Positions 16,195 to 28,024 of a DNA stretch of 64,000 bases are shown one piece after another; position 1 is the first letter of the stretch, and every line of letters starts with the position of its first letter. The position numbers and the translations under genes were made by a program. The notes below the pieces were generated by a model. That model did no database searches. It was not told the DNA's origin and saw nothing but the letters and a program-made list of their open reading frames with translations. Origin of the DNA: Hemiscyllium ocellatum (lineage: Eukaryota); assembly GCF_020745735.1 (NCBI RefSeq), contig NC_083413.1:64294001-64358000 (forward strand). Reading direction: 5' to 3'.

Positions 16195-16377
16195 GACACG
16201 CGACTGCCAGGCGCATGAACGAACGTGGGAAATTCTTCTGAACAATAAGGTCCTTTCACAATATTTCCTAACAGCCATCCAGATTAACTGGGGAGACAGT
16301 GCTGTGCAGCGAGTGGATGTGGACCAGAAGGTGAATCCTTCCAGATGGCGTGACACCAGTTTAATCACCATGGCAAC
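16195..16377. promoter_or_regulatory. Candidate neural enhancer: CACGCG, CGTGGGAA (16224), AACAAT (16241), CCAGATGG (16341), X-box-like ATCACCATGGCAAC (16364)
   Basis: Dense motif cluster in non-repetitive DNA 2.2 kb upstream of her8. Confidence 0.55.
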
Positions 16378-17416
16378 CGTTACACACTTGCATCATTTCA
16401 GTAGCTTTCAACAACTGCACTTTCATATTTACTCAACCCGATCAATTGTTTTTTTACATTTTCTGGATGTTTTGTATTCTATTTAATTCAAGAGAGATCA
16501 CTAATATTCATTAATATGTCACATGTTCCAGAATATTGAACCACACCTCCATTTGTCTGAATATTGTAAGGATGCCACATTGTAAAATTGACTTGTAACT
16601 TCAACCTCTGACGAACTCAACTCATGGAGCCTGCTATTCCTCGCCCCCTCTCTCCACCTTGGTTGATCTGCATCCCAGGCTCCATTTACCTAACTAATAG
16701 TAACACTCTGTTAGTCTTACATCTCCGAGTATCCACCGTCTCGCGGAGATAGAGATGGAGAGTTCCAGACAGCCAGATGAAATAGCTACCTGCCTTGCCT
16801 TCACAATAATCTGGTTCTCCTTCTGAAAGGCTGCCCTTCCAACAAACGTTATTTTTGTCGTTCATGCACTCTGACGTTTGAGATATAGCTGTAAGAAAGA
16901 AAAGATCTTCTAGGTTCTCCTGAATTCCACTCCAACCTCACCCACCCCTTCACCCCCCCCCCCCCCCCACCCCTTCCCTCGTCCAAGTATCTGGGGCTTG
17001 TTTGCAGCTAACGTATTTAAATAAACCACCTCTCGTCCATCTGTCGCAACAGATTCCCATGTGTGCTACTCCAATGCTTGAGGTGCCGTGGGAGGCGCAT
17101 CCCATTGAGACTGCGGGGCTGTGTGATAGGATACCTCATGACCCAGCATTGTTCTAACTCCTTCCCACGCCCGGGAGCTGGAGGGTTACACTGTAGGCCT
17201 TTTCGCTCCTTTTTTTTCTCTGTGAATTGATCTTCATTCTTGTTACTTTCGTTTCCCCCACCCACGACTGAACGCTACGATTAAAGACGGAACGCTGTCA
17301 CCTTTATGATGAATTTGTTCACTCCGTCTGCTCGGGGCTGTTGAACATGCGCCCAGAGACTTCGTCCTGTTAAAGGCCACAGCAAGTTTTAAATAAAGTG
17401 GTAGTGGACCGTGTTA

Positions 17417-17556
17417 AAAATCTCACAACGCCTCCTGATGAAGGAGCAGCGCTCTGAAAGCTAGTGCTTCCAAATAAACTTGTTGGACTATAACCTGGTG
17501 CTGTGTGATTTTTAATTTTGTCTACCGTAGTCCAACACCGGCATCTCTTAATCATG
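17417..17556 (+). mobile_element. Penelope-terminus element (P1) with hammerhead-like motif
   Basis: CTGATGAAGGAGCAGCGCTCTGAAAGCTAGTG; imperfect TSD AGTGGACCGTGTTA / AGTGGACCATATTA. Confidence 0.8.
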
Positions 17557-18271
17557 AGTGGACCATATTACCATAATGCACACGGCAGAACTAAAACAAG
17601 AGTTCCTGTGTCATGATAATCTGGATTCAATATTTTTAATTAAGTTTAACTCGCTTTTATTAAATGAATCCACTCGGCACGATTTCAATGTCTAAGTGGC
17701 CGAGAAATTGTCAAGAGTTTCTGTGGTCATTCTCCCTGGGAGTCTTCAGCCGTGTGCATAGCGAATCTCAGTTGCTGGGAAACCGGTGGAGAATGTAGGA
17801 AATACGCAGCAGGTCAGTCAGTATTCTGTAAAGTGAGGTTCTGGCGTGTGATTCCCACTGGTTCTTCCCTACCCCTGTCTTGCTTCACTTTTCTGAATGC
17901 AGATCCACCCCCCCCCCCGGCCCTATGACCTTACGGCTTCATGTTCCAATGACTGATATCAAAAGGTTGAAACGAACAGCTGAATACCACTTTAACACAG
18001 CAGCCCGAGGTCTGCCTACGGGGAGCAGTACGGAAATCCGACCGCAGCATTAATATTCTTGTTTGTATTTCGCGTAATTTAGCAATAATTTTGCAACTTG
18101 CATCTGTGAAGCACTAACTTTTAAACTGTGTTCTGTAAATACTTATACAAGCCGGGACTCCTCCAAGCATTGTCACTTTACTGAGAACAAGAATGGTGTT
18201 GTGGATCTTCCATTTCAACAACAGCTTATATTTTTAATAGTATCTTCAACTTAATACAGCCTCCTTAGGTA

Positions 18272-18513
18272 GGCTCAGTGGTGAGCACTGCTGCCTCACA
18301 GCGCCAGGGACCCGGGTTCAAGTCCTGCTCAGGCAACTGTCTGTGTGGAGTTGGCACATTCTCCTCATGTCAGCGTGGTTTTCCTCCGGGTGCTCCGGTT
18401 TCCTCCCACAGTCACAAAGATGTGCAAGTTAGGTGAATTGGCCATGTTAAATTGCCCATAGTGTTAGGTGCATTAGTCAGGGGTGAATGTAGGGAAATGG
18501 GTCTGGGTGGGTT
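18272..18513 (+). mobile_element. HE1-type (V-SINE) tRNA-derived SINE, 3' truncated
   Basis: A/B boxes GGCTCAGTGG / GGTTCAAGTCC and V-domain CTCCGGTTTCCTCCCACA. Confidence 0.9.
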
Positions 18514-19181
18514 TTGAAGAACAAAACGCAATGATTATAAAACTGCCTGATTCCGATAGAATGACATTTTCTGTAGTTGATTATACACACTGCCAATTTT
18601 ATAAGAAGTAAACGAGTGAAAATCTTCGACAGTATCAACCATCCAGAATTTGAATGAGTGAATCCATCATTTTAGTACAGACATTATTTTATTAGCAAGA
18701 AGAAACGAAGATGATAGGAGTGATTAAAAAAATACAGTACACACTAATGATGACCATTGAATTGTCAAGATTTTTTATTGTCCATTTGTATATATCATTC
18801 ATTCGTATTATTTTTGTCAATTTTGTACAGCAGCCCACAGAGACAACTTTATAAATGCTTAACAGCTACTTATCCTGTCTATAAGCAAACATTCCACCAC
18901 ATTCTATTAGCTGTCAATTTGTTGGTACAATTAGAATAGAGAGTGAATGTAATCGCTGTGGATAGCTACACATGTAAGTACATGTGGGTCTTCAATTAAA
19001 ATAAGCTTCCAAATATTGAGTTATCAAGCAGGTACACTGAAATTCTAATCATGATGGTAACAGGGAATTTCAAACTTGTAATTTAGTTTTGACACATGCT
19101 TGCAAGTTGCCTGAATTTTCATCTTTTGATATGACTTGACATTATTTGAGAGCAATCAAAATGATATCTTTCCTACTGATT

Positions 19182-25270: not shown

Positions 25271-25671
25271 TCAGTTGGCTGCATAAAACGGATTCCCAGA
25301 AAATAATTGGGAAAGCAACCATTCAGAGCTGTTGCCACTCACCACTGACTTGACCCAGTATAGGCTGATGTGGCACTTACTTGCTGCTGCCCATTTTCCA
25401 CGGGTGGGTGGGTGGGGGGGACAGCATATGAAAAAATGAACAAAGAAGAGGCTCCTACATCTTACTGTCTATTGGAGGCATAGTCTAAGGAAAAGCTTGA
25501 AGATTGTTGTCATTTAGCAGTCTGACAGATATTGAAACTTGAAAAATTATTGCATTTCTATAATAATTCAGAATGAGCGTTGGCAAACAAAAAAAAGCAA
25601 TTTTGAGACTGAGCACCCAACAACAGCAATCCTGAACAATTGCCTTTTATAACTTCTTCACTATTGATATT

Positions 25672-25790
25672 GGAAAGGTTTGAAGGGATATCGGTCAAGA
25701 ACTAGGTGGGACTAGTTTACTTTAGGATTATGTATGCTCATTGTAGATTGATTGGACTGAAGGGTCTGTATCTGTGTTGTATGATTCTAA
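25672..25790 (+). mobile_element. Short CR1 3'UTR fragment
   Basis: TTGGACTGAAGGGTCTG motif. Confidence 0.65.
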
Positions 25791-26122
25791 ATAAAAATGT
25801 AGCATTTCTATCAAAACCATACAATCAAAAAGTGATACATTTACAGCATTGGCATTAACATAACACAAATGCATTGTAGTCTGTTAAGTATGCTAATAAT
25901 TTTAAATTTCATATTTCCTGAGTCACTTGTATTACTGAACATTGTCAACATTTTTGAATTCTGCTCACCTGTAATTGGATGCAACTATGGTATATGATGA
26001 GAAAAATCAGCTGCAAAACTCAGATGATAAACTTTAGTAACTATTTATTAAACACCGAGTGCATTATTGCCGTTGAATCATTGGATGTATTTGATTTATA
26101 GTGTGGAATATCAATTTGGAGA

Positions 26123-26256
26123 CAGTGAGGATTGCAGATGCTGGAGATCAGAGTCCAGAGTGTGGTCAGACAGCATCCGAGGAGCAGGAGAATTGACGTT
26201 GTGGGTATAAGCCCCTCATCAGCATTCCTGTGCTTTTCCAGCACCACACTCTGGAT
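26123..26256 (-). mobile_element. Penelope-terminus element (family P2), degenerate
   Basis: Homologous to 32385-32517 and 40237-40462. Confidence 0.7.
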
Positions 26257-27963
26257 TGCAATGTCAACCTGCGGTGTCATGGATACAATGCTGACTATTA
26301 TTGCTGATTACTCTTCTGTCCCATTGGAGATCATTTAATTTCAATTTGGCATTCCCTGACAGTTACACAGTTGAATTTGTAAATTAGGGATGTGTATCTG
26401 GACACTATCGTTCATTATCACACAACGTTGTCATTCCATCATGTTAAAGTATTTAATTTGGTTTTGTGCTAGCTTATTACTAATGATTATTTTGTACCAA
26501 GATCTACCGTGCACTGCAATATATGGCATCCACTCTGCCTGTTCTCAGTACACACAAAATCCGTTGATCATCAACTTAATGTGCAATCTGAGCATCAAAA
26601 TCGATTTTTACAAGTTTCTTGCCCTAGTGCTGTTGGACCAGGTTGCTGTTAGACTCTGGTTTACAATTTTTTCTTCCAATCTCACAGCCAAATGCCTGCT
26701 TCTGACCTCCTGTCTCTTCGTGGTCTTGCAGTTCCCCATCACCCAACTCCACCTAATCAGCTGGTTCTCCTCACCCTCCTGACACAGAATAGTCAAAATA
26801 ACTGACAAAAACTCGAAGCATTCCCGTAACCAGGGTTGGGAAATATTACTGCAATGTGCAAGCGTAAACAATCTGTTTCCATGGTTTCGCGACTTATTAA
26901 TGATGGGTCACACGTGTTTGTGAAGTTGTCCTTCCGAAGTGGAAATTCCCATTTCAGCTCCAGACTGGCGCAGTGTCAGATTGAAGTCTGGTTGTGAAAA
27001 AAAAAGTACTTCTATGTCTAGATTACATCGTTCAGACACTCGCAAGTGCTTCACCTGTTGGGTGTCCGCAGGCCGATTCCCGGCACAGGGGCAGGTTTAC
27101 TGAAATGCCAGGGGGAGCCCTCAGAGGCGATTAGTTCGGGAGGGTAGTGCTGGGAAGGAGAGGGGTGCGAGTTGGCGTGGATCGGGAGCAGGTGATCGCA
27201 GAAAGGGGACGGGAAGTGTGGGAGGCGATTACCAGGAGGGGAGAGGGCAGAGGTGCGGATAGGTTCAGGGCAGGTTGGCCAGAGTTAGTCGCCGGTGTGT
27301 TTTTGACATGGGGGAAGCACTCCCAGTTCTCAAAGTGTCACACTCATGGGTGTGGCTGCTTGCAGCCTGCAGTGGCCCATTTAAAGGTGATCGCCTCCTC
27401 CCCAGCCTCGGTTTCCCTTAGTGGCGTGAATAGAGCTTCAGACAGGTTTTAAGGGGACCTAATTGTACATGCAAGTCGGTTTAATGGTTGATTCAGGCAT
27501 GGACTTTCAACATCATTTTATTGGTGGTATAATGATACGGTAGTTTGATCTCGGAATGACCATTTGCTTCCTCATTGTCACAGTGAAGACGAACGATCTT
27601 GAAAAATTGCTCCTGAATAGCCGATAGATCACGCTGTATAGAAAACTACTAGACAACGAAATTGGATGCCAAAATTGTGAACAGAAAGTATTTTGAAAAT
27701 CCTGGGCCCTGTCCAGGTTCTATCCTTTCTTAGTTTTCTCAGAACGCTAACAAGCTCGACAAGTTATCCCAATCAAGCCTATTCTTAGCAGAAAGGTACA
27801 CATTTGTTTCTGCTCAGTACCCACTAGGAGTTAGACACCGATAAACATTGTAACAGAAACGGGTTGCAATTCACATGATTAGATATTGCAACAGGCTGCA
27901 ATAGGTTGACAAACTGTGTCTGGAACAAGTATTTGATGTTTTAAAGTAGCATTGAACCATCTG

Positions 27964-28024
27964 GACACGCGACTGAATTGCATCAGCTGGAGCGTGGGAA
28001 ATATCGGCAGACAAAGGTTCTTTG
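27964..28024. promoter_or_regulatory. Candidate distal enhancer: CACGCG, CAGCTG (27984), CGTGGGAA (27993), ACAAAG (28011)
   Basis: Same motif order and spacing as 16195-16256. Confidence 0.55.

Follow-up and report, generated by a model that had tools for sequence, protein, structure and literature searches.

The locus analyzed here raises the question of why three short motifs, a Hairy-type class C box, an RBPJ site, and a Sox-like motif, stand twice in the same order and at the same distances upstream of a hairy-related gene. In the window (the whole 64-kb stretch of DNA that was analyzed), the pattern GACACGCGACTG-N17-CGTGGGAAAT-N8-ACAA(T/A) was matched only at 16195 and 27964 (cf. Table 1), and the blocks, their coordinates, and both spacers were found as a first-pass annotation of this DNA had claimed. 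All three blocks of both copies read on the plus strand, and the spacers differ in sequence between copy 1 and copy 2 and are equal in length (17 and 8 nt). On the strand of the gene, each core runs from a Sox/HMG motif over 8 nt to TTTCCCACG and over a further 17 nt to CAGTCGCGTGTC, the Hairy-type class C box.

Such a likeness might be a chance product of two unrelated stretches, or the two copies might belong to an interspersed repeat. By our own estimate, a stretch of 64 kb has many exact 12-mer repeats, about 100 same-strand pairs being expected at random and fewer for a CpG-rich word. However, the combined gapped pattern is unique in the window, GACACGCGACTG with up to one mismatch occurs there at just two places (0.04 expected), and when the copy 1 sequences of six other species, the window and its nearest relative excluded, were made into an nhmmer profile, this retrieved copy 2 at E = 8.4e-5, the runner-up match in the 64-kb window having E = 1.3. 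Since a profile of copy 1 from other species recovers copy 2, the resemblance is real. A repeat search and self-BLAST put no family on either module, positions 27962-28035 were found at single-contig depth (four runs, three species) versus about 4000 at 29058-29118, and both copies lie at syntenic positions in other species, conserved over more than 400 million years. The modules are therefore no high-copy repeat, a possibility that had been raised at the outset, and we hold an origin by chance or as repeat copies to be very improbable. The RBPJ motif CGTGGGAA is itself enriched, with six occurrences in the window versus 0.8 expected; around her8.2, conservation extends to three of the six and to the proximal TGTGGGAA, and is partial for a fourth, the CNE-3 site.

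Table 1 Positions of the motifs, conserved elements, and genes in the window
Feature	Position	Strand	Remarks
her8.2 (HES6-2 orthologue) coding region	12740-13975	-	Four exons; bHLH-Orange; WRPW end
hes6 coding region (short-loop Hes6 type)	5078-6178	-	Downstream of her8.2, orientation shared
her8.2 proximal promoter	14078-14139	-	RBPJ site TGTGGGAA (14132-14139), then TTCACATGCTAAT, then TATAAATA (14078-14085)
RBPJ site CGTGGGAA 3' of gene	11611-11618	+	About 1.1 kb downstream of her8.2 stop codon; conserved block 11410-11997
CNE-1, conserved non-coding, surrounds module 1	15931-16499	-	From BLAST; about 2.2 kb upstream of her8.2 start codon
Module 1 Hairy-type class C box GACACGCGACTG	16195-16206	+	Core CACGCG 16197-16202
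Module 1 putative high-affinity RBPJ/CSL site CGTGGGAAAT	16224-16233	+	TTTCCCACG unchanged in 9/9 CNE-1 orthologues
Module 1 HMG/Sox-like block ACAATAAGGTCCTTT	16242-16256	+	
CNE-3	17098-17363	-	CGTGGGAA 17162-17169 (minus strand), 9 nt on ACAATG
CNE-2, conserved non-coding, surrounds module 2	27861-28358	-	About 14 kb upstream of her8.2; inside CpG-rich island 26-30 kb
Module 2 class C box GACACGCGACTG	27964-27975	+	
Module 2 putative high-affinity RBPJ/CSL site CGTGGGAAAT	27993-28002	+	Callorhinchus CNE-2 retains TTTCCCACG
Module 2 HMG/Sox-like block ACAAAGGTTCTTT	28011-28023	+	Continues into CTTTGAT (TCF/Sox-like inverted partner)

Motifs of the two cores

Both modules satisfy the CSL consensus YGTGRGAA, whose best form is CGTGGGAA, and exactly this canonical high-affinity sequence is found at 16224 and 27993, as had been proposed for RBPJ; nine CNE-1 orthologues and the two CNE-2 sequences all have TTTCCCACG unchanged. 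On the CGTG side of the RBPJ site stands the class C box, whose core is CGCGTG in all nine CNE-1 orthologues and TGTGTG in CNE-2 of Callorhinchus. Two known composite sites were considered and rejected. The Su(H) paired site (SPS) has two head-to-head CSL sites 15-17 bp apart, and no second YGTGRGAA-like site was present at this distance on the GGAA side; the nearest candidate there, TTCACAAT, differs by three mismatches and lies 23 nt off by hand count. In a PTF1 bipartite site, a CANNTG E-box stands on the 5' side of the TTTCCCACG TC-box, one or two helical turns away; no CANNTG was found 5' of this box in either module, and CAGCTG stands 3' of it at 4 nt in CNE-2, with none in CNE-1. The published consensus of Hairy class C boxes, ggCACGCG(A/C)C (PMC449821), is matched by GACACGCGAC at 9 of 10 positions, consistent with the earlier, putative assignment of the box to the Hes class C sites.

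Conservation of the elements and the her8.2 locus

The modules do not stand alone, each being the core of a conserved element (CNE) of about 250-570 bp with many other invariant blocks. BLAST matched CNE-1 in Callorhinchus (15931-16387), Rhinoraja (16101-16499), Narcine, Heptranchias, and Stegostoma, and only the module core (16159-16246) is still recognizable in eel, pike, and turkey; since nothing else can be aligned in bony vertebrates, the module appears to be the functional core of CNE-1. The element is present in one copy per locus in seven cartilaginous fishes (the shark of the window included), two teleosts, and turkey, lies 1.3-4.4 kb upstream of her8.2 across the species carrying it, and was not found within 10 kb upstream of the gene in platypus. 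A syntenic CNE-1 with TTTCCCACG, GTCGCGTG, and the 17-nt spacer was retrieved from Stegostoma, Heptranchias, Rhinoraja, Narcine, Callorhinchus, Anguilla, Esox, and Meleagris. Eight of the nine CNE-1 sequences compared carry the 12-mer of module 1 unaltered, the exception being Esox with AAGTCGCGTGGC, and GCAGTCGCGTGTC forms 13 consecutive invariant bases in eight of nine orthologues. ACAA (TTGT on the gene strand) is unchanged in all 11 aligned sequences and stands 8 nt from the RBPJ block in ten of them and 10 nt in turkey, while the RBPJ-to-box spacer of CNE-1 is 17 nt in every species compared. Copy 1 has kept its three blocks and this spacer from sharks to teleosts and turkey, which upholds the view of the twin as non-random and ancient. 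The flanks of CNE-1 also bear the conserved motifs GATTAAAC and TTAATC.

For CNE-2, BLAST gave a match in Callorhinchus (L003:2060-2568, E = 2.5e-48), where it lies about 7.6 kb upstream of her8.2, and single-copy contigs about 95% identical to it are present in two other species. In eel, pike, turkey, and platypus, a search of the 10 kb upstream of her8.2 yielded no CNE-2; in Stegostoma, Heptranchias, and the two batoids, the flanks compared end short of the place where it would lie. Conservation in other cartilaginous fishes was confirmed through synteny, in Stegostoma, Heptranchias, batoids, and Callorhinchus for CNE-1, and in Callorhinchus for CNE-2. The Callorhinchus CNE-2 has kept the RBPJ and Sox-like motifs, with ACAATAGGCCTTTGAT at the position of ACAAAGGTTCTTT; its box is GACACACAACTT, in which both CpGs have become TpG (TGTG for CGCG; CACACA for CACGCG), and its RBPJ-to-box spacer measures 18 nt. 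Because the box is lost there, the class C input seems dispensable in at least one lineage or enhancer. The "rigid grammar" of the first-pass annotation holds for the constant 17-nt spacer of CNE-1, but not for the box and spacer of Callorhinchus CNE-2 or for the Sox-RBPJ spacer of turkey; moreover, a fixed spacer length within an indel-poor conserved element is weak proof of a spacing rule. Both elements lie within CpG-rich islands of the type that stays unmethylated (CpG observed/expected 0.52 at CNE-2 versus a background of 0.1-0.25). Conserved motifs in the flanks of CNE-2 are CAGATG and CAGCTG E-boxes and TGTTTAC.

The last exon of her8.2 is 90% identical to "hairy-related 8.2" of Stegostoma, and the linked gene is the orthologue of chick HES6-2 and zebrafish her8.2, as the link to hes6-2 drawn earlier had implied. 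The shark, ray, chimaera, eel, and pike loci each have a call for a second HLH/Orange gene 6-8 kb downstream of her8.2; a third her gene or pseudogene was not found in the window. Since both copies stand upstream of one gene, her8.2, about 2.2 kb and 14 kb from its start and on the side opposite hes6, the suggestion of one enhancer per paralogue fails. Therian mammals are without her8.2 (PMC5577775).

Further RBPJ sites are conserved around the gene. The proximal-promoter arrangement was found in nine of nine other vertebrates examined, platypus among them; its RBPJ site adjoins the TATA box and is the positional counterpart of the Su(H) site reported at -203 of zebrafish her8a (PMC3082574). 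Stegostoma, Heptranchias, Callorhinchus, Rhinoraja, and Narcine also share the 3' site, as GTTCCCACGGTC or in closely similar form. In CNE-3, Heptranchias, Narcine, and Callorhinchus retain the RBPJ site, which has decayed in Stegostoma and Rhinoraja, and AACAAT is unchanged in the orthologues.

Origin of the second core

Outside the three blocks, the cores of CNE-1 and CNE-2 share little (42-56% identity over 80 columns), so that the case for paralogy rests on about 35 matching bases. We infer duplication, and the main rival is convergence, by which CNE-1 and CNE-2 would be independent her8.2 enhancers with equal sites and spacing because one protein complex must assemble on both. Convergence would agree with the unrelated flanks and spacers, with the lack of a self-BLAST link between the two regions, and with nearby pairs of RBPJ and ACAAT at other spacings (9 nt at 17162; 12 nt at 28800). 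The Callorhinchus CNE-2, with its 18-nt spacer and without the CGCG core, points the same way and fits a later gain of the box in sharks as well. However, the following observations argue for a common origin: (i) identity extends beyond the cores, to CAGT and TC around CGCGTG, AT after CGTGGGAA, and AGGTYCTTT after ACAA, and these flanks are not strictly required, since they vary in CNE-1 of Esox; (ii) TGTG in Callorhinchus is the expected product of CpG decay of CGCG; and (iii) the identity of shark CNE-2 is slightly higher with CNE-1 of eel and turkey (53-56%) than with that of shark (45%), and its spacer has TCCAGC in common with eel CNE-1, as expected of an old copy. We therefore regard convergence as unlikely, though far from negligible. 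Most probably, CNE-2 arose as an ancient copy from the CNE-1 core, before the shark-chimaera split, and would now be its distal, shadow-type partner.

Proposed function and known systems

As single-copy, conserved elements with RBPJ, Hairy-type, and Sox-like motifs at equal spacing, CNE-1 and CNE-2 are probably Notch-responsive enhancers and not a matter of chance or repeats. On balance, the sequence evidence leads us to favor the hypothesis that the modules are the cores of two single-copy conserved her8.2 enhancers, activated through RBPJ and receiving a Hes-repressor input, with CNE-2 as an ancient copy of the CNE-1 core; the binding proteins, the sign of each input, and the target gene are what we infer here. 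In neural or presomitic progenitors with active Notch, NICD-RBPJ at the central site would switch on her8.2, a SoxB-type HMG factor bound to the neighboring motif might assist this activation, and a bHLH-Orange repressor (Hes5-type, Her8.2 itself, or Hes6) at the class C box would limit or end the response. The outcome would be negative feedback or an incoherent feed-forward pulse, and CNE-1 and CNE-2 would act beside at least three further conserved RBPJ sites, namely those of the proximal promoter, CNE-3, and the 3' side.

Alternatively, CAGTCGCGTGTC may be bound by a non-Hes factor, such as a bHLH-PAS pair or a zinc-finger protein, or RBPJ may serve mainly as a default repressor, and the elements would then be her8.2 enhancers or silencers without a Notch-on, Hes-off loop. 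The 13 invariant bases of GCAGTCGCGTGTC are longer than a typical bHLH footprint, and TCGCGTG fits the xenobiotic-response core TNGCGTG of bHLH-PAS proteins. As to the loop, repression of chick HES6-2 by Notch is said to act through Hes5. PMC3082574, summarizing Fior and Henrique (2005), gives this gene as repressed, not activated, by Notch signaling, which is not equivalent to the "Notch-responsive" of the first-pass annotation. Against a non-Hes factor, the box agrees with the Hairy consensus (9/10) and with the achaete Hairy site (10/12) (PMC449821), the locus encodes, and is co-regulated with, Hes-family repressors, and zebrafish her8.2 requires Notch, its expression being strongly Notch-dependent and nearly abolished in mib1 mutants (PMC11394890; 10.1101/2022.09.15.508073). 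We consider this alternative distinctly improbable and retain RBPJ activation with Hes-type repression as the preferred reading.

The closest known systems are found among Hes/E(spl) genes (mouse Hes1, Hes5, and Hes7; Drosophila E(spl)-C), whose Notch-responsive promoters and enhancers combine RBPJ/Su(H) sites with N-box or class C autorepression sites. Like these, the elements described here have a putative high-affinity CSL site beside a Hairy/E(spl)-type box, upstream of a bHLH-Orange WRPW gene that is Notch-dependent in zebrafish. In contrast, their CSL site is single and not part of a head-to-head pair, they lie 2-14 kb upstream and not in the promoter, the module is present twice, the CSL-to-box distance of CNE-1 has stayed at 17 nt for about 450 million years, and the gene is of the Hes6 subfamily. 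Within this subfamily, the paralogous zebrafish her8a is Su(H)-dependent and carries a GTGGGAA site some 200 bp 5' of its ATG (Chung et al. 2011, PMC3082574), the equivalent in the window being 14132-14139; that report describes the proximal site alone, and distal tripartite modules are not mentioned in it. Full texts searched for the 12-mer yielded no publication on the her8.2 locus. The Drosophila achaete Hairy site, GGCACGCGACAG (PMC449821), has 10 of 12 bases in common with GACACGCGACTG, the CACGCGAC extension included, but it belongs to a different phylum and gene, and in the window the box has a CSL site at a constant distance from it. Finally, the option of shadow enhancers, also raised earlier, fits the sequences, CNE-1 and CNE-2 being two separate elements of like make-up near one gene that share three motifs and hence the same predicted transcription factor inputs; they have the core alone in common, with different conserved motifs in their flanks.

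Two copies of a box-RBPJ-Sox-like module

Direct reading of the window bore out the first-pass description of two copies of a module, each composed of a Hairy-type class C box (CACGCG core), an RBPJ block, and a Sox-like block. The box-to-RBPJ pattern is TTCCCACG-N17-NAGTCGCGTG, and the box 12-mer occurs at only two sites in the window, even when one mismatch is allowed (0.04 expected). The window contains no assembly gaps (N). Pairwise alignment of the 300-nt surroundings of modules 1 and 2 gave no further convincing similarity. A profile HMM was then considered, representing the 130-nt core of CNE-1 (the conserved non-coding element around module 1) and derived only from Heptranchias, Callorhinchus, Rhinoraja, Narcine, turkey, and eel. 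It matched CNE-1 of the window with an E value of 4e-33 and CNE-2 (the element around module 2) with one of 8.4e-5, the next best match having an E value of 1.3; the alignment to CNE-2 extended over 62 nt and was ungapped internally except for an indel of 2 nt next to the Sox block. Since an independent CNE-1 profile matches CNE-2 far above the next hit, the resemblance of the twins is real.

Features of the modules, the two bHLH-Orange genes, and the conserved RBPJ sites outside the modules
Feature	Sequence	Position	Strand	Remark
Copy 1, box	GACACGCGACTG	16195-16206	+	followed by 17-nt spacer
Copy 1, RBPJ block	CGTGGGAAAT	16224-16233	+	followed by 8-nt spacer
Copy 1, Sox-like block	ACAATAAGGTCCTTT	16242-16256	+	
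Copy 2, box	GACACGCGACTG	27964-27975	+	followed by 17-nt spacer
Copy 2, RBPJ block	CGTGGGAAAT	27993-28002	+	followed by 8-nt spacer
Copy 2, Sox-like block	ACAAAGGTTCTTT	28011-28023	+	
hes6, coding region		~5078-6178	-	short-loop type
her8.2, coding region		12740-13975	-	last exon 90% identical to Stegostoma 'hairy-related 8.2'
her8.2 proximal promoter RBPJ site	TGTGGGAA	14132-14139	-	
CNE-3 RBPJ site		17162	-	partly conserved
3' RBPJ site		11611		1.1 kb 3' of her8.2, conserved

The earlier statement that neither copy sits in a recognisable repeat held as well: module 2 is single-copy by contig depth, and neither the repeat search nor self-BLAST revealed a repeat family covering either module. 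Single-piece contigs span positions 27000-29200 at single-contig depth in two other species (~95% identical) and in a second sample of the same species, vs a depth of ~4000 at 29058-29118, which indicates that CNE-2 is single-copy; two of the three sampled 31-mers of module 2 were common to both of these species. About 1.1 kb separates module 2 from the 29058-29118 interval, which is itself an interspersed repeat of high copy number (contig depth ~1900-4000 vs ~7-10 in its flanks; four runs, three species). Shared repeats in the vicinity of both modules (17413-17571, 29234-29341, and C-rich tracts) were dismissed as incidental multi-copy SINE-like copies; those at 17413-17571 and 29234-29341 lie in opposite orientations and are missing at the syntenic place in other sharks. 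As the copy beside CNE-3, a further conserved element at 17098-17363, is missing at the corresponding syntenic position in Stegostoma and Heptranchias, it represents a lineage-specific insertion. Further copies of this family are located at 9805-9969, 32936-33370, 53083-53618, and 56001-56084. LINE-type fragments with reverse-transcriptase-like ORFs (19185-20330, 23567-24690, 30633-30962, 43632-44838, and 55070-59084) occupy much of the interval between CNE-1 and CNE-2 and beyond. A non-coding RNA was discarded as a candidate, with zero Rfam matches in the window, and a protein-database search with a chance ORF across CNE-2 yielded zero matches.

The her8.2 locus and its predicted binding sites

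The window harbors two bHLH-Orange-WRPW genes, her8.2 and hes6, both on the minus strand. Residues 1-135 of her8.2 are nearly invariant in chimaera, turkey, platypus, eel, and pike, and its relatives include 'HES-6-like' proteins of birds, reptiles, and monotremes; judged by its sequence, the gene is the orthologue of her8.2/HES6-2. In platypus, an intact her8.2/HES6-2-type gene with a proximal RBPJ promoter is present, and the loss of this gene type in other mammals has been reported (PMC5577775). Modules 1 and 2 lie ~2.2 and ~14 kb 5' of the her8.2 start codon, respectively, with hes6 on the opposite side. We also considered a lost third her gene beside CNE-2, and this was rejected, for tblastn with her8.2 matched only her8.2 and hes6. 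Because the window contains neither another her gene nor a remnant of one, and both modules are 5' of her8.2, the proposal of one module per paralogue fails. The CpG observed/expected ratio is 0.5-0.8 at 4-18 kb and 26-30 kb and 0.1-0.25 elsewhere, which places both modules in CpG-rich islands, presumably of the kind that stays unmethylated around developmental genes. Toward the end of the window, a long C/T-rich low-complexity tract (59900-62900, GC skew down to -0.93) is followed by GC-rich sequence at 62-64 kb (0.60-0.61), where the next gene may have its CpG-island promoter.

The sequence CGTGGGAA, the canonical high-affinity RBPJ/CSL site, occurs six times in the window vs 0.8 expected. 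One of these copies, at 56992, sits in a reverse-transcriptase-like ORF and is probably incidental. The her8.2 proximal promoter and the region 3' of her8.2 also carry conserved RBPJ sites, as does CNE-3, where conservation is only partial. The core promoter (minus strand, 14078-14139) consists of CGACCCC..GTGTGGGAAA, ~29 nt, TTCACATGCTAAT, ~7 nt, and TATAAATA, a layout that is the same in ten vertebrates (the window and nine others), including platypus. With several conserved RBPJ sites, the her8.2 locus looks like a multi-site CSL target. In the modules, the (A/T)TTGT motif fits SoxB-type HMG proteins and is a predicted site for them; CTTTGAT, the partner of the Sox-like motif in CNE-2, might just as well belong to TCF/LEF. 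The Hairy class C consensus is ggCACGCG(A/C)C, and the achaete Hairy site is GGCACGCGACAG (PMC449821); the module box fits the former, resembles the latter, and is thus a predicted Hes/Hairy site. The module is not a Su(H) paired site: the box lies on the CGTG side of the RBPJ site, and the GGAA side has no second CSL-like site at a distance of 15-17 bp. Nor is the module of the PTF1 type (E-box plus TC-box), because CANNTG is missing 5' of the TC-box.

Conservation of CNE-1 and CNE-2 and the origin of the twins

The her8.2 loci with 10-kb flanks were compared in Stegostoma, Heptranchias, Callorhinchus, Rhinoraja, Narcine, Meleagris, Anguilla, Ornithorhynchus, and Esox. The pattern CACGCG-N15-25-YGTGRGAA was found exactly once per locus, always antisense to her8.2 and 1.3-4.4 kb upstream of its start codon, the exception being platypus, in which CNE-1 was not found within 10 kb upstream of the gene. 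CNE-1 is conserved over ~250-570 bp in cartilaginous fishes, with many invariant blocks beyond the three motifs, and for eel, pike, and turkey its alignable part shrinks to the module and its immediate surroundings, ~50-125 nt in all, which identifies the module as the most constrained part of the element. In the alignment, TTGT, TTTCCCACG, and AGTCGCGTG are invariant in nine of nine CNE-1 orthologues. The spacer between the RBPJ site and the box is 17 nt in all nine and varies in sequence (shark, TTCGTTCATGCGCCTGG; eel, TTCCAGCATTCGCCTGG; turkey, TCTCTTCATTCGCTCAG), while the distance from the Sox-like TTGT to the RBPJ block is 8 nt, or 10 nt in turkey. A CNE-1 core of ~70 nt has stayed nearly unchanged for ~450 million years.

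For CNE-2, the distant comparison comprises one species, Callorhinchus, in which the 27861-28358 stretch of the window aligns with positions 2060-2568 of the her8.2 locus (L003). There, CNE-2 lies 3.4 kb past CNE-1, at ~7.6 kb upstream of her8.2; the extra distance in the window consists of LINE and SINE fragments. Eel, pike, turkey, and platypus showed no CNE-2 within 10 kb upstream of her8.2. The 10-kb flanks of Stegostoma, Heptranchias, Rhinoraja, and Narcine did not show it either, but in these four it probably lies farther out, which makes the negative result uninformative there. The Callorhinchus element has retained the RBPJ site together with the HMG-like pair (ACAAT...CTTTGAT) and the greater part of the spacer. 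Its box reads GACACACAACTT, with both CpGs changed to TpG, and its spacer is 18 nt. Further blocks conserved in Callorhinchus on the gene strand of CNE-2 (27900-28160) are TGTTTACAA (forkhead-like), CAATTA (homeodomain-like), and ACAGTTTGTCAACC. Two copies of the proneural-type E-box CCAGATGG are present, one being CCAAATGG in Callorhinchus, and another such E-box, CAGCTG, lies inside the 17-nt spacer (CAGTTG in Callorhinchus). These conserved E-boxes suggest that CNE-2 may also receive proneural input.

The twin cores could have arisen by duplication or by convergence, and we favor the former, giving it, on small numbers, about twice the weight of the latter. Convergence would have to account for identity between CNE-1 and CNE-2 that also covers bases flanking the cores, and such flanks vary in Esox CNE-1. 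The TGTG state of the Callorhinchus box is, moreover, the expected product of CpG decay from the CGCG form, CAGTCGCGTGTC. Shark CNE-2 also has slightly higher identity with CNE-1 of eel and turkey (53-56%) than with that of the shark (45%), and TCCAGC is common to the spacers of shark CNE-2 and eel CNE-1. For these four reasons, the CNE-2 core is more probably a duplicate of the CNE-1 core. A larger segmental duplication was rejected: minus-strand CGTGGGAA followed by ACAATG does occur 0.8-0.9 kb upstream of each module (17162 and 28800), but the 28800 region matches CNE-3 at this site only, and self-BLAST was empty. The 'rigid grammar' proposed in the first-pass annotation is only partly supported: ten sequences spanning ~450 million years all have the 17-nt distance, whereas Callorhinchus CNE-2 has lost both box and spacing. 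The constant distance partly supports a spacing rule, indels being rare in conserved elements anyway. The modules thus offer a natural experiment on spacing constraint between transcription factors, with ten sequences at 17 nt vs one at 18 nt lacking the box.

Possible Notch and Hes input to her8.2

Genes of the Hes6 subfamily act at the step where progenitors maintained by Notch turn into differentiating neurons. To our knowledge, their cis-regulation has scarcely been described, one proximal Su(H) site having been reported for her8a. Fior and Henrique are said to have attributed, in 2005, the Notch repression of chick HES6-2 to Hes5. In the mechanism that we propose, Notch activation would bring NICD to RBPJ at a number of conserved sites, among them the centers of CNE-1 and CNE-2, and a progenitor Sox factor would cooperate via the flanking HMG motif. 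Hes-family repressors (candidates are Notch-induced Hes5-type proteins, Her8.2 itself, or Hes6) would then occupy the class C box and curtail transcription. All these binding steps are inferred, and such a Notch-on/Hes-off arrangement would explain how her8.2/HES6-2 can look dependent on Notch in one context and repressed by it in a different one. Published findings agree with a multi-site CSL target: zebrafish her8.2 expression is highly dependent on activation of Notch (PMC11394890), mib1 mutants lose this expression (10.1101/2022.09.15.508073), and the paralogue her8a requires Su(H) and has a proximal GTGGGAA (PMC3082574). Chick HES6-2 is repressed by Notch signalling according to Fior and Henrique 2005, as cited in PMC3082574. 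A basic-domain mutant of cHES6-2 lost the repression of Hes5, so that DNA binding is apparently needed (PMC2996300); autorepression through the class C box is therefore possible too.

A full-text literature search with the box 12-mer, read in both directions, turned up nothing but unrelated primers. One of them, designed for the promoter of mouse Math1/Atoh1 (the '-126 ARE' mutant), contains the 13-mer AGACACGCGACTG (PMC7797379), the same extended class C box as in both modules. As Notch and Hes control Atoh1, the box may recur at other targets, which we regard as a lead only. It is conceivable, though we think it improbable, that the RBPJ site and the box form a dedicated composite in which the fixed 17 nt let a Hes/Her repressor act directly on NICD-RBPJ as a pulse generator or toggle, ancestral to gnathostomes, duplicated at her8.2, and perhaps reused at other Notch-controlled genes, the Math1/Atoh1 primer being one hint.

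The core joins a predicted Notch activator site with a predicted site for Notch-induced repressors and is doubled in cartilaginous fishes. It offers a compact candidate, amenable to experiment, for explaining why her8.2/HES6-2 is Notch-dependent in zebrafish and Notch- or Hes5-repressed in chick. Combined CSL and Hes autorepression sites are a familiar kind of enhancer or promoter, known from Hes1, Hes5, Hes7, and E(spl)-C. What sets the present case apart from these and is new here, at the level of sequence, is that an ancient core with constant spacing lies upstream of her8.2/HES6-2 and that cartilaginous fishes carry it twice, as two separate conserved elements.
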